A stretch of DNA of 64,000 nt, from assembly GCA_025558095.1 (NCBI GenBank), contig JAIVFI010000034.1, positions 310,001 through 374,000 on the forward strand, read 5' to 3'. The position numbers and the translations under genes are program-made. Below, piece by piece: positions 4,005-10,742 of the stretch. The stretch is from Hyaloraphidium curvatum SAG 235-1 (Eukaryota > Fungi > Monoblepharomycota). The notes under the pieces are model-generated. The model searched no databases, had not been told where the DNA came from, and saw only the letters and a list, made by a program, of their open reading frames with translations. Every line of letters starts with the position of its first letter. Within the stretch, counting starts at the first letter, position 1.

Positions 4005-4243
4005 GGCATAGAGGAGAAGATCATGATGTCAGTTCATCCGTACACTGTAGAGCCTTGGAGACAGCACATGCACTGCACGTCCTTGTCATGGTGCGGCATT
4101 GCAATAGATTTGAACTTTGACCGATGGTGGAGGTGGAGCTGCGCTGCTCGTCGCTGTCGCTCGCTTCCTTCGCTACTCCCCACGCTCGCTTCCTTCCCGT
4201 ACGCGTCGCTTTTGCCCCGAAACATCCTCTGCGCTGCTCTACA

Positions 4244-5289
4244 ATGCCTGCTTCTGCTCTCTTCGTCGGCGTGCCGCCGCGGGACCAGCTCGTGGACCCG
4301 GCCACGGTCCCCTTCTACCGAGGAATGTTTGAACATTATGCGATGGCCCGCGTGCCTACTGCCGGGGCGGATCGCGGCTCGCTGCTGCAACTGGCGCGGC
4401 ACGCGGGAGAATTGGGCGGATGGGCTGGCGAGCCCGCGGTGGACTACTACGTCGTCTCGGAGCAGCTCATCCGCGACGAAGAGCGGCTCGACCTCCTCCG
4501 TCTTCCCAAGGCCTTTCGATGTCTGGAGAATCTCGAGCGCTCTCGCAGGCAGCGGTACGAGCTTGGTGATCGGAGGGTGCTCCAGGCGGAGAAGGACCGC
4601 CTCGCTGCAGCGGCGGAGGCCGCTATCGACGGCGACCCCGTGATTCTGCAAGCGATCGATTTCCGCGACGCGGTGGCGGCCACGGATGAGATGCACGCCA
4701 AGCTGGAGAGGCAGTGCGAGTTCGTGCTCTTGGTCAGCGCAAAGCTCGTAGGTTGCCCGGCCGCGGATACCACCGTTCCTCATTCGCCAACTTCAAACAG
4801 GTCATTGAGATTGCAATGCGCCGCGGCAAGAGCCCGGAACAGGCCGGTGCCATCGTCAACGCCCTTTATCCTGCTCCAGGGGGAGCCGTGCCAACCCATA
4901 GTCCCTTCGAACTGCGGCATTATGGCTACGACTGTCGGGCGTACCTTACGGAATTGATTGGAATGCTTGACCGCGCCCTCCGCAGCGCGAGCGCCGAGCA
5001 GGGATCCGAGCTGTGGGTCTGGTTTCGGACTCGGCATTGCTGGTTTGCCAACGCCATCCATCGCAGGACCCCGGACCAGGTCGCTGGTGTGGTCTCGCAG
5101 TACACCGACCCGACCCGAACCTGGTCCTACGCCTGCGCCAAGATCACCAAATACCTGACGTCCTTCTGTGATTTCTTTTGGGGACACGTCGGACCGTTGC
5201 TCGAGCGTTCCGGTGGTGCTGGGTACCGGGACGAGCTGCGCAGGGCTGCCGAGCAGCAGGCCGGCGAAGTGGAACTCGCGGAAGGGTAG
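4244..5289 (+). CDS. Hypothetical protein (2 exons)
   Basis: ORFs 4124-4957 and 4714-5289 join in frame via GT-AG intron 4733-4800; coding-like composition; no family recognised. Confidence 0.55.
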
Positions 5290-5530
5290 TGGCTGCGGTC
5301 GATCGAGGACCGGTTCCGGAATGTGGAGGTCTGTCTGCTTGACCGTGCGATGCGTCGGAGATGGGTGATTGGGCTCGGTCCCGAACCAGAAACTGTGAAT
5401 AGGAAAAGGCGTTTCGGAGTGCTTGAAAGGAGGAGCGAATCCTGGCTTGGGGACGAAGTCGAAAATGGCGTCCTGCTCCCGGGCGTCATGCAACCTTCGG
5501 TGCGAGTCCTGTGCCGAACAAAGTCGCTAA

Positions 5531-5637
5531 TTAACCCTTAGTCCCCTTGCGTCCCGCATTCTGACCGCTCTGGGCCTGCGCACCGCTCTGGGCCCGCATC
5601 GCCCCGCGCCTCGCGCGTTAGAGGGCGGGCTTAAGCC
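5531..5637 (+). repeat. TTAA-CCCT motif with 13-bp direct repeats; candidate transposon end or promoter element
   Basis: TTAA 5531-5534 followed by CCCTTAG; ACCGCTCTGGGCC at 5564-5576 and 5582-5594; second TTAA at 5631-5634 inside palindrome GGCTTAAGCC. Confidence 0.4.
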
Positions 5638-5713
5638 GGGCGGCCGGCGCGGTCGGCGGCGGAGCGCGGCAGCCGGGAGGAGCGCGTCGCACTCGCTGAG
5701 CGGCGTTCCCAAA

Positions 5714-8583
5714 ATGCCCGGCGGCTCTGTCGAGCACACTTCACACTCATCTCGCGGTATCCGTTCCTCCAGCATCCTGCAGCAGCTGCTGCTCCGCGCG
5801 TTGCAGAAGGCACCGTTCCCCGACAAGGCGGATCTGGAGGACCCCACCCTGACCTGGGAAGCACGGGAGGGCATGGTCAACCACCGCGACTATCGCTTTA
5901 CGTGGCCGAAGATAGCAAACTCGGACGCAAAGATCGCGAACGCCCTGACTGTTTTCATTCGGGCATGCGCGCTGGCAAACCCGCCGCTGCCGGCAGCCCA
6001 GCCCGAGGATGATGAGGGGCCTCAGGAGGACAGCGAGGAGCATGCCAAGCGCTTTTGGGACGAAGTCGCGTCGAAGCAGCTGAAGCGGGGCAAGGCGGTC
6101 CGCCCCGTGCCCATCCGGACCAAGGTCGTAGACTCACCGGTCAAGCTCTCCGCGCGCAACCTGGAGCACCTGATCATAAGGCCTCTGTCTCGCGAGCGTG
6201 GGGGTCTGGTGCAAGGTGTGCCGTCGAGAGATATCGTCGACTTCCGGGAGCACCTGTACAAGCGTACGGAATCGGATCTTCTGGAGGGCGACTCGCAGGA
6301 GCCCGACGTGGAGCAAACGGAGGCCGATGACCTCGTGCCGACCGGCACCATGACCTCGTGCGAGTTCTTCTCCAACCTCATGGCCATGCGATTCTTCGTG
6401 CCGAATTCTCAGATCGTCGAGGTCGAGATCGGCGAGGGCAGGACGGTGCGCAAGCGTATCCTGGTGCGGCAGCGCGGGCGCTGGTACCTCGTCCTCGCCT
6501 TCAACATGTCTACCGACGGCTTCGTCATGTACCTGCACCTGTGGCTGTCTGCTTGGCACGATCCGGAGCATCGCTTCCGGCTGGTGATCCCCGGGAACCC
6601 TCCGATCACGCCCGAGAGCCGAGGACATCTTCTCCGAGTTCGTGTCCTCGAAAAAACGAGCTCAAGTTCACCCCAAAGGGCCACATCTTCCCCTCTCCGG
6701 AACTCGCGCTGGCCAGCGGCGGTGGCGGCTCGATCGGCAACATGGGCGCGGTGGTGATCAGGCCCGAGGATGCCAAGCTCCGCGGCAGCACGATGAACGA
6801 CGCCGACCGCACGCCCATTGAGGGTCCATTCCGGGACACGGTGGGCGTGGACATTGGCGGCCACCACGCCGCGGAGATCCGCTACCGTCCAGTCGAGATG
6901 GAGCGAAGCGTCGCCCTCAAGATCTCGCTGAAGTTCATCGAGGAATGCGATGCCGGCGAGGAGGATCTGGTGCTGTTCCAGCTGCTCATGGCGGCGTTCA
7001 ACGAGGCGGCGGACCTCATGGGCGTCCCGCGGGCGGACAGCTACGAGCGCGAGGTGGAGCTGGCCGGGATGGGGCTGCTGCTGCTGTCAGAGGACTTCCA
7101 CAAGCTCGAAGTCGCCCGAGAAGTGCGCAAGCGCATCCGGGCGCTGCACCGCCAATCCGGTGCATACATCTCCAACCGTCAGCTCGCAGAGTTCAGCGGC
7201 CGCGCGCGCTACGATCGCTTCAACGCCATCCTGCTCGCCTCGGTCCCGGACCAACGCCGGCCCGGCCTGACTCTGCAGCAGATCCTGGATGCATTCAAGA
7301 GCACGACGCGCCGGCTCTTCCCGAAGCAGGCTGGTGCGGCGCCGTCCCTGTTTCATGGCGAGCTCTCGGAGCTGGACGTTGCCCACCAAGCCTACAACTC
7401 GCGGGAGGCGAAGAAGGCCAAGTTCGACCTGATGCGAACGATCGACCGTAACAAGCAGAAGGAGGCGCGCCTCTGGGAAGGTTCCACGTTCGTCGAGACG
7501 GATATGGTCGATCGGGACTATAAGCTCGCGTACAACCAGACGCAACTCCGGCAGTACCGCCACGGGGTGCTGCACCCGAAACCGCACATGCGCTTCACGG
7601 ACTCCCAGCCCGCCCGCGAGCCGCGCCGGGCCCTCGAGCTTGCCATGTTCCGCCCGAGCGAGCCGGACCGCCGGAAGCCCAACGTGCGCCAGCACACTGA
7701 CCCGTACTTTGGCGACATCTTGTCGGAGCCCGGGCCCAAGGAGGTCCTCTACCAGCCTCTCCACAACAACCCCAACGGGCCCGCGCTGGCCAAGATCGTC
7801 TACGTGGGCAAGGCAGGGTATCCACATCCTGGCGGGTACCTGTCGGTTGACCAGGCAGAGGTGGCTCACATTGTGGCTACGCACGGTCACCTGACGCTCA
7901 GGACGGACGAGAGGGGGACAAGTTCGCTGGACACGAGCTTCCACCGCCCCAACGCGTCCTACCTCGACATCAACCACCCGGACTCGCACACCTTCAACAG
8001 CATCACGCGCGAGTCCCACGAAGAGAACGCGCTGTCGAAGCTGCGTTTCAGCGAGACCACCTGCGGCCACGAAGGCACCAAGTTCCGGCGGCGGCACGAT
8101 CCCGGCGGGAACCGGCTCCTCCCGTACTGCATCACGCAGACCGGTGACGCCTTCCGGCGCTTCAAGTCGTACCGGTACGATGCAGAGGGGCTCCTGCTCG
8201 CCGGTGAGCACGTCGCCGGCTGCCCGAGGCGCGCGGCGAACGGGTTTGGACCCGTGCGTGCTACGCAACGCCTCCTTGCCGGGCATCGCCAGCGGCCCAA
8301 CGACCCGCCCGGCGTGCTGCAGAGGCACCTGGACCCGATCGGCTCGTGCTGCCGCCGCATCATGCAGCGCACCAAGCAGATCGAGGCGCTGCCGGAGGAG
8401 GAGCGGGAGCACAAGGAGGTCTATGCCGACGACGAGCAGCGGAGACACGCGGTGCACGGCCGAGACGCGATCGGGGCGAACGACAACGGGTTCGTGGGCG
8501 ATTCGTACCTCAGGTACGAGGGCCAGCGCCACGAGTTCAACATCCGGCCGGGTTACGTCTTCGATCCGCCGGCATTTCCGTGA
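5714..8583 (+). CDS. Large Fanzor-like (eukaryotic TnpB-family) RuvC nuclease, ~956 aa, with a 1-nt frameshift at 6650-6657
   Basis: ORFs 5714-6757 and 6358-8583 join at GAAAAAAC. RuvC-I DTVGVDIGG (Asp 6850-6852); IVYVG with Gly at the canonical Glu position (7807-7809); alternative Glu in TDERGTSS (7909-7911, cf. Fanzor vdE..TS); RuvC-III HGRDAIGANDN (Asp 8464-8466, cf. RD.NAA.N). No introns. Confidence 0.72.
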
Positions 8584-8830
8584 AGCGATGTAGCGTCGAA
8601 GAGCCGAGTTTCGAAGCGGATTTTCGAGCTGGACGGGAAGCAGGTCGAGGTGCTGCGGGGATCGCAGCTGCCGCCGGGGCCGGGCAGGGCGTTCTGGGAT
8701 GCGGTGGAGGTCAGGGAGGACGGGACGGGGGTGGTGATTGTGGAGATCGACTAGTGCAAGGTGGCGGGGTTGCGTTCTTTTTCATTTCATCGGCAAGCCG
8801 CCGAACTACATCTAGAGACGGGTATCGTGC
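8584..8830 (+). ncRNA. Candidate Fanzor omega-RNA scaffold / element right end
   Basis: Directly 3' of the Fanzor-like ORF; stems GCTGCG/CGCAGC (8652-8668) and GGCGG..TTGC/GCAA.CCGCC (8763-8802), then CTAG (8812-8815). Positional inference only. Confidence 0.35.
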
Positions 8831-8882: not shown

Positions 8883-10398
8883 TCATTGCTTCCGCCTCCT
8901 CGCACCGCCGGCGATCGCCGTCCCGTTTGTCGCGGCCGCCGCCGCCGGTACCTCCGCGGCCTTCCCTGCCTCCGCGGCAAACAGCGGCACCGCCGTCCCG
9001 CCCCACCTGACGCTGAACCTGCCTCCCCTCCAATCGATCTCGGACCCCACGACCCCCGCGCACCACAGCGGGAACGCGAGCAGCTCCCGCGCGCACCACG
9101 CCAGGACGAGCTGCCACGCCGGCCGCCCTGCAGGCGCGCGGCGGTGCGACGCGCGCCAGATGACGAGGTCCGCGAGGGCCCAGAGGGAAAAGTGGGCGAG
9201 GAGGAAGAGGTCCGGCCGGGGGAAGCCGGCGGTGCGGAGGGCGAGGGCGGCGCAGAGGCCGAGGAAGACGGATTCCGTAAGGGGTTCGAGGACGGTGGCA
9301 GCGGGTTCCGTGAACTTGCGGACGCGGATCCAACGGAGGCGGCGGGTCCAGTAGTCGCGGAAGCGCATGGTCGGGGAGAGATGCTGGTAGGCGAGGTCAG
9401 GAGTCATGGCGTGCCTAGATCAAACCGTCAGTCCTCAAACAAAAAGAGTTACCAAATCGACAGCTCACCTCTTGCCGTTGTTCCAAAACAGCTTGGCGAT
9501 CGAGTTGTCCTCGGCCAGGTTGTCCTTAAAGTCCTCGATCCCCGTCCCCCCCGTGAAGCGCTCCAGCAAGTCCTTGCGGTACAGACACGATTTGCCGATA
9601 ACGCACGACGCGATCCCGATCCAGTTGAAAAAGGTGTACATCTTCGCATGCGCGGTTCCGAGGAAAGCGGCCTCCAGCATCGCGCCGACGCCGCAGCTGC
9701 CCGAAGGGAGCACACCGACCGGCAGGTGGTGGACCAGCTCGGCGCCGTCCACCACGGCCTCGACCGCGCGAAGCAGCACGTCGCGGTCAGCGAGGAGGAC
9801 GTTCGAGTCGATCGTCCACACGAGGGGGTGGCGCGCGGCGCGGAACGGTTTGGCGAGGTTGCGGACCTTTGGGTTCTTGCCGGCGGCCAGCTCGCCCACA
9901 AAAACCTCGGCGACGTCCGGAAACTCCTCTTTCAGTTCGCGGGCGATGGGAAGCGCGGGGTCCGCGGCGTCGGCGACGCTCATGATGACCTGCAGCTTCC
10001 CGTCGGGGTATCGCTGGTCCAACGACGAGCGCAGGTTTTCCCGCAGGTTGGCGTCGACGCCCTTGAGCGGGCGGAGGATCGTGACGCCGGGGAGCAGGGC
10101 GGCGTCCTCGGGGACGCCAGGGTCCAGCCGGGGCGGGGGTGGCGGCCGGGAGTAGCGGCGGTACCTGGGAACCAGCCGGTCAGCAGGGGTTCCGGGTCAG
10201 CCGGCAACCGGCCCCTCACATGTTAATCGTGCCGATGAGGCTGATCACCGTCATGACGCCGTACCAGACCGCGATCCCGCCGACAAAGGCGCGCTGGGGC
10301 AGCGGCAGGGCGTCCATTGCGGCGCGCAGCTCGCCCATCTGCGCGACCAGGGGCGCCGCGTCGCCGCTGGCGAGCAGCTGCCAGCCGGAGGTGTTCAT
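8883..10398 (-). CDS. GCS1: Ceramide glucosyltransferase (glucosylceramide synthase, GT21)
   Basis: N-terminal TM helix; GVTILRPLKGVD, KNPKVRNL, VWTIDSNV, CVIGKS, LAEDN, RRLRWIRVRK; two introns. Confidence 0.92.
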
Positions 10399-10742
10399 CT
10401 GCGGCCGGGGCGCGGCCGGGCGGGATGTTGCGGGACGGGCCGGGGCAGATGGGGACGGCGGGCAGGGCAAGGGGAGCCGGCGGCTGCCACGCCGGGTGGC
10501 CGCTGAGGGCGGCGGGGCCCGCGCGCCTTAAATGAGCACTGTCAGGCCGGAATGCCGGGGGAACCGCCAATCTTGAGCTTTTCCAGACCAGGGACTGGCG
10601 AAGCGAGCGCGTGACTCGATCACGATCGGAAACCCGAAAGGGCGGAGGAAGTTGGACGCAAACGATCTTTGCTATGAGCTCCTCCGTCACGCGCACCGAT
10701 TCCCTCGCGGTCCCCGGCCGCGCCCGCACGCCGGACCCGGCC

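Follow-up and report, generated by a model that had tools for sequence, protein, structure and literature searches.

Most Fanzor1 proteins are 600-700 aa long, and PpFz1 carries a Fanzor RuvC Insertion (FRI) of ~100 aa within its RuvC domain (PMC11423790). DPG is the RuvC-I signature of Fanzor, and the Fanzor zinc finger begins six residues after the shifted glutamate (bioRxiv 10.1101/2023.08.09.552727). In viral Fanzor1s, the TNB domain is accompanied by DUF8286. No link between Fanzor and Hyaloraphidium curvatum was found in the papers searched. This chytrid-like fungus is the host of the gene described here, which occupies 5714-8583 of the window, the whole stretch of 64,000 nt that was analysed. 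A first-pass annotation had joined two overlapping ORFs across a single frameshift into one intronless, Fanzor1-type RNA-guided nuclease, said to be much longer than the characterised ones and hidden from automated annotation.

The overlapping ORFs were recovered as described, and by codon usage both are strongly coding, with GC3 of ~0.8-0.9 and a frame switch near 6650.

5714-6757, plus strand: ORF1, 347 aa, the N-terminal third, presumed REC/WED; its coding signal stops near 6617.
6655-8583 (coding part; frame open 6358-8583), plus strand: ORF2, the RuvC/TNB-like half with large insertions, overlapping ORF1.
6617-6657, plus strand: frame break, likely two extra bases, one at ~6617 and one in the A6 run at 6652-6657.

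The gene had not in fact escaped annotation: it is present at NCBI as DFJ74DRAFT_646499 (KAI9006893.1, 946 aa), the sole protein matching ORF2, in a model that joins both ORFs by a 29-nt intron at 6638-6666 and leaves only the function unannotated. One RNA-type contig spans 5709-8557 with 0 differences and 0 gaps relative to the genome. Such contigs show the main transcript, and rare spliced forms can be dropped from them. The run behaves as RNA, since two introns of the neighbouring upstream gene (53 and 54 nt) are spliced in it; the ungapped contig therefore indicates an intronless main transcript for the gene, as had been proposed. The annotated 29-nt intron was rejected for this transcript, as the contig leaves 6638-6666 unspliced.

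The genome and the main transcript both carry the frame break, which is identical and unspliced in the latter; because the RNA-type contig carries the same sequence without difference, assembly error was ruled out as its cause. Fine codon analysis did not favour the single frameshift first proposed. It pointed instead to two candidate extra bases 35 nt apart (~6617 and 6652), with 11-12 third-frame codons between them, the two-shift path reaching 32.3 bits against 18.0 bits for one shift (14 bits better), a margin matched in 0/889 control windows. Read through the third frame, the two-shift path gives ~955 aa. At each break site an in-frame CGA codon and a G follow. That two lesions should arise independently only 35 nt apart in a gene of 2.9 kb, both at CGA-G, would be improbable (~2%), and the abundance of the mRNA is contrary to what is expected of a plain pseudogene. 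A canonical -1 frameshift was rejected, as there is neither an in-frame slippery heptamer nor a stimulatory structure (z +0.70). As follows from its sequence, ordinary translation of the main transcript would yield only a 347-aa N-terminal piece without RuvC, and production of the full protein from this transcript is impossible without recoding.

Comparison with the Fanzor1 family placed the following features on the gene.

6509-6520, plus strand: STDG, candidate Fanzor1 WED strand motif; best WED-block site (p ~0.5 alone).
6841-6861, plus strand: VGVDIGG, candidate RuvC-I strand, with D at 6850; best strand-block site (p 0.045).
7168-7200, plus strand: ISNRQLAEFSG, aligned by eye with the Fanzor1 S-N-x-E...G helix start after RuvC-I; not significant alone.
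7372-7434, plus strand: block resembling the Fanzor1 FY...KWRRLRF helix, from alignment; pLDDT 70-81 in a Fanzor-guided and hence circular model.
7795-7926, plus strand: rearranged RuvC-II, with the G of IVYVG at 7807 and the alternative E of TDERGTSS at 7909.
7927-8460, plus strand: expanded TNB/zinc-finger region, ~180 aa against 37-61 aa; no CxxC pair.
8461-8562, plus strand: degenerate RuvC-III (RD at 8461-8466) with GRDAIGANDN, D at 8464, and a terminal RP..F motif.

The four motifs of the first-pass annotation lie in the places and order it gave, at 6850, 7807, 7909 and 8464 (D380, G699, E733 and D918). The candidate RuvC-I aspartate at 6850, D380 in that numbering, is D370 of the annotated protein; an alternative candidate at 6949 (CDAGEEDLV) scores better on downstream residues. 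STDG was absent from the earlier motif list and fits the family pattern behind the WED block, T/S-D/N-G. The spacing from G7807 to E7909, 34 aa, is the modal Fanzor1 spacing. In Fanzor1s the RuvC-III D/N sits in an RD..AA.N helix; the RD at 8461 was the top site for the long RuvC-III block (p ~0.2) and the third for the short one.

Searches with the single ORFs or NCBI's annotated protein as queries gave no match in Pfam, NCBIfam, PDB sequences, or viral or metagenome contigs, and no homologue in a 5.8-billion-protein search or among 1.84 billion representatives. A full-length Fanzor HMM, an HMM of the GHLTL-sharing clade and a gap-tolerant profile did not separate the gene from shuffles, and neither small RuvC-II/III profiles run on the genome nor hhalign picked it up. 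Block models were built from a Fanzor1 reference set gathered from H. curvatum itself, from metagenomes and from giant viruses, with the protein of the gene itself excluded. The RuvC-II block profile peaks at the glutamate chosen in the first-pass annotation (p ~0.003 alone), and the best WED, RuvC-I, RuvC-II and RuvC-III sites fall in the correct order (p ~0.001). The score of the ordered chain was reached by 5/5000 shuffles with the full RuvC-I block, by 0/5000 with a short RuvC-I block that was picked after viewing the data, and by 0/98 real decoys. Unguided MAFFT matched all five invariant family columns (G, E, S, R, D), which occurred in 0/60 shuffles and 0/29 decoys; G, E and D by themselves were matched in 9/60 shuffles. 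The motif match lies beyond chance, though modestly so (p ~0.001-0.004).

The top named ESM Atlas clusters for the annotated protein were DUF8286, Cas12a RuvC and Cas12b, at scores of 0.80-0.83 that, being below 0.9, serve as leads only; by the rule of the listing, the first 18 matches fell within the DUF8286 and Cas12a sets. ORF2 alone, run with no filter, returned nothing from ESM Atlas. A single-sequence AlphaFold model reached pLDDT 34, and a Foldseek search with it was uninformative. When a Fanzor alignment was supplied as guide, the model rose to pLDDT 70-82 over the motif blocks, with triad distances that are not readable; its comparison with Fanzor2, Cas12 and TnpB gave Z of 6-7 (7.1), a value below the threshold of the tool and circular on account of the Fanzor rows. 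For RuvC homology to Fanzor/TnpB, negative whole profiles thus stand beside ordered blocks (p ~0.001) and ESM leads (0.80-0.83). The richness of the genome in Fanzor1s was also counted for Fanzor1 ancestry. Taken together, these weak but converging signals make Fanzor/TnpB (Fanzor1) ancestry likely.

The gene departs from the family in several respects. The RuvC-I DPG is absent and replaced by DIG at 6850 (or DAG at 6949). At the canonical RuvC-II position, where the family has an inert G or P, lies a G, and a C-terminally shifted E is present (G7807/E7909; p ~0.003). No Cys lies at +6 from E7909, and the zinc finger is represented by five scattered Cys with no CxxC pair. The D-to-E distance is 353 aa against 157-228 in the family and the E-to-D distance 185 aa against 37-61, so that spacers are two to four times normal. 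Because two defining features of the family were not found, the gene is classed here as a Fanzor1 derivative and not as a family member; among the Fanzor relatives of this Fanzor-rich genome it is probably the most derived. Of the label "Fanzor1-type nuclease", the ancestry and the choice of D/G/E/D residues were supported by the block profiles, the alignment test and the ESM Atlas features, whereas "nuclease" was not, given a degenerate RuvC-III, missing zinc-finger pairs, no omega-RNA or transposon ends, and a broken frame. Its size had been described as exceptional, which is correct against the 600-700 aa norm (PMC11423790) but not against other long Fanzor1s, which include proteins of 855-922 aa and Fanzor frames of 960-1230 codons in the same genome. 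What is unusual is the placement of the extra length, inside RuvC and TNB.

Three further features lie at the margins of the gene.

5341-5722, plus strand: upstream block, probable promoter/start context, common to an unrelated orphan gene on C24; 75% overall.
8431-8607, plus strand: duplicated 3' end, found again at C3:668172-668348 (177 nt, 94%), in frame and with the same stop.
8584-8754, plus strand: 56 codons of coding-like character that follow the TGA in the same frame; present once, GC3 0.86.

The upstream block is 82-95% conserved in 5341-5460 and 5541-5720 and 30% in 5501-5540. Two conserved modules around a diverged middle suggest a promoter that may have been kept by selection at both places. 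The C24 gene (L008:4730-7624, minus strand) is a spliced orphan of ~950 aa with no Pfam match that has the ~380-nt upstream block; it was rejected as a paralogue, the proteins being unrelated. The codons at 8584-8754 score +12, against -36 and -27 in the other plus frames. Upstream lie a DEDDh exonuclease (PF00929; 2120-2854, minus strand) and a transcribed orphan gene at 4124-5289 with two introns (4748-4800, 5013-5066) and no Pfam match; a glycosyltransferase family 21 gene (8883-10470, minus strand) lies convergent to the gene at its 3' side. As the PF00929 and glycosyltransferase neighbours look like ordinary host genes, the region does not stand out clearly as an island.

The search for intact copies suggested earlier returned one full copy and one 177-nt fragment only in the genome. 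The fragment, on C3, is transcribed, starts 11 codons before RuvC-III and ends 24 nt past the stop, and has no matching left end; 6/9 of its coding changes are synonymous, including one in the RuvC-III aspartate (p 0.011). By analogy with the ghost loci of S. punctatus (PMC10432273), a stand-alone omega-RNA locus is conceivable, but the resemblance to a captured gene fragment is closer. It sits inside a small chimeric ORF (L002:1340-1720) with a flanking 9-nt direct repeat, the two units 236 nt apart. The C3 fragment adjoins a short stretch that resembles a truncated pyridoxamine-phosphate-oxidase-family gene. No terminal inverted repeats were found around the full gene, and a short direct similarity between 5346 and 8586 was rejected as element ends, as 2% of random pairs reach the same level. 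With a single full copy and no inverted ends, the gene does not appear to reside in a mobile element. Near the gene, no Rfam match, distinctive fold or family of ends pointed to an omega-RNA; folding z-scores are powerless here, as genuine right ends also score near zero, and small RNA is invisible in RNA-type contigs.

The H. curvatum genome holds a large Fanzor1 repertoire, with at least 34 RuvC-II and at least 35 RuvC-III matches genome-wide, at loci L025-L032, L036 and L040-L076 and at C14:722300-725400, C31:259843, C7:693815, C1:1445043 and C2:359651. These include a 10-copy, a 5-copy and a 6-copy family, the last having open frames that span 666-1230 codons. In the 10-copy and 5-copy families (L061-L073 and L051-L055), sharp right ends, GTGTAGCTA and GTGTAGCCA, lie ~470-680 nt past the RuvC motifs, and upstream of those ends the two families share a conserved 35-nt core, a candidate omega-RNA with variable guides. 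A three-copy Fanzor1 family (L029, L030 and L031, on C12, C15 and C23) has a long insertion after RuvC-I and a conserved 70-nt stretch past the stop, ending GTAGTAGTAGAA. L028:2816-5863 is a near-intact Fanzor1 of ~1000 aa that carries a long N-terminal extension rich in Cys and His and has 47-49% relatives in metagenomes (P0002, P0003). L026:2577-5623 (C5) is a Fanzor1 with the non-canonical motifs DVG and RDELSG, adjoined by an ORF of helix-turn-helix/IS630-like look (L026:6696-7538). Weak RuvC-II matches in open frames of 449-1230 codons (C21:509843, C7:333483, C15:535916 and C37:279643) are possibly further diverged Fanzors that might bridge to the gene.

The explanation we favour, with moderate confidence, is an immobilised Fanzor1 derivative, long under selection and recently broken, with a 347-aa product that would lack RuvC. 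The gene would descend from a Fanzor1 (eukaryotic TnpB) RNA-guided nuclease that, judging from the family, bound an omega-RNA and cut DNA beside a TAM with a split RuvC (D, alternative E, D). It may then have turned single-copy and immobile behind a promoter block common to another gene, acquired ~300 aa of insertions in RuvC and TNB, and shed the cysteine pairs of its zinc finger. Prolonged purifying selection during this remodelling is suggested by a GC3 that is high throughout, by the 6/9 synonymous changes relative to the C3 copy (p 0.011) and by the conserved promoter modules. By then the protein may have been nucleic-acid-binding, with weak nuclease activity or none. Two nearby extra bases would later have broken the frame in this strain, where the mRNA is still made. 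The gene is thus probably a relic rather than a hidden working nuclease.

That the gene is not Fanzor-derived, but an orphan or a member of another RNase H-fold or transposase family with RuvC-like motifs arisen by chance, is unlikely. Such an origin would account for the lack of a significant whole-domain match, for three of the four blocks not being significant alone and for spacers far beyond the family range, and the p of ~0.001 is weakened by the ORF having been picked from many orphans. It is harder to reconcile with top named ESM Atlas clusters that all belong to the TnpB superfamily, with four best sites in order, including a WED site that the first-pass annotation did not use, and with a G-to-E spacing equal to the family mode. 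An ordinary active Fanzor nuclease, its full protein made in other strains or from a minor form in which the 29-nt intron, or a longer one, is spliced out, and its omega-RNA supplied by the 3' end or the C3 copy, is improbable. Contigs do lose rare forms, the transcribed C3 copy resembles a stand-alone omega-RNA locus, and two active families have right ends resembling the TGTAGC that lies past the stop; however, the neighbouring introns are 53-54 nt, the RNA-type contig has no splice joint, the zinc finger is lost, and the C3 copy lacks a left end, evolves like coding sequence and has no Rfam match.

A working domesticated Fanzor that reaches full length by recoding and uses guide RNAs in trans is more improbable again. 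Recoding could take the form of one -1 or transcriptional slip at A6, or of two +1 shifts at slow CGA codons (AGC CGA G and AAA CGA G), both of which yield GAG. CGA-G follows both best break points, CGA is rare (0.4% of codons), C|GAG occurs at 3% of junctions, and CGA stalls favour +1 shifts in yeast with impaired Mbf1 (PMC6301793); the 2.9 kb carry no further lesion and the mRNA is abundant. The CGA-G argument is post hoc, however, since an extra base upstream of C|GAG yields CGA automatically, and four to five other in-frame CGA codons in the gene are read normally. There is also no canonical slippery heptamer or structure, and a strict scan of 197 kb, run with no positive control, found no clean single shifts. 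The fullest version, a domesticated Fanzor with a zinc-free rebuilt TNB, a captured promoter, two successive +1 CGA frameshifts and trans guides from the other Fanzors of the genome, is the least probable of these alternatives.

If the Fanzor1 ancestry of the broken derivative is true, a Fanzor lineage exists that is invisible to Pfam, HMM and BLAST, surveys would miss the most derived members, and RuvC and TNB would tolerate ~300 aa of insertion. A single-copy, selected and promoter-equipped Fanzor would be a candidate for eukaryotic domestication, of which no described case was found in the papers searched. As it stands the gene is unpromising as a tool, and better prospects are offered by the intact, multi-copy and giant Fanzors that the same genome carries.

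Among known systems, Fanzor1 (SpuFz1, GtFz1 and PpFz1; PMC10432273, PMC11423790, PMC10530073) shares with the candidate motifs of the gene the order of WED strand, RuvC-I D, G, alternative E and RuvC-III D, an alternative E 34 aa past the G in a DE..TS context and a RuvC-III D near the C-terminus, and with the gene itself a fungal host. The candidate RuvC-I D lies ~370-380 aa from the start in the gene; the RuvC-I D of SpuFz1 is D383. The gene differs in its DIG, long spacers, lack of CxxC pairs, single copy and broken frame, and in that no omega-RNA or terminal repeats were found at it. The other Fanzor1s of H. curvatum (L025-L032, L036, L051, L056) are likewise long, and in L026 DPG and the usual RuvC-III are missing too. 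Unlike the gene, they are picked up directly by PF07282 or the block profiles and retain the zinc finger, and several families occur in multiple copies with sharply defined right ends; pairwise comparison showed no similarity between them and the gene. TldR (bioRxiv 10.1101/2023.11.30.569447), a nuclease-dead domesticated TnpB, is a precedent for an immobilised, selected TnpB-family protein; TldRs are bacterial, have lost catalytic residues and kept the guide RNA, whereas the gene has a candidate triad and no guide was found. The FRI of PpFz1 offers a precedent for an extra domain inside RuvC, the difference being that it is one insertion of ~100 aa, while the gene has several, ~300 aa in total, one of them within TNB.
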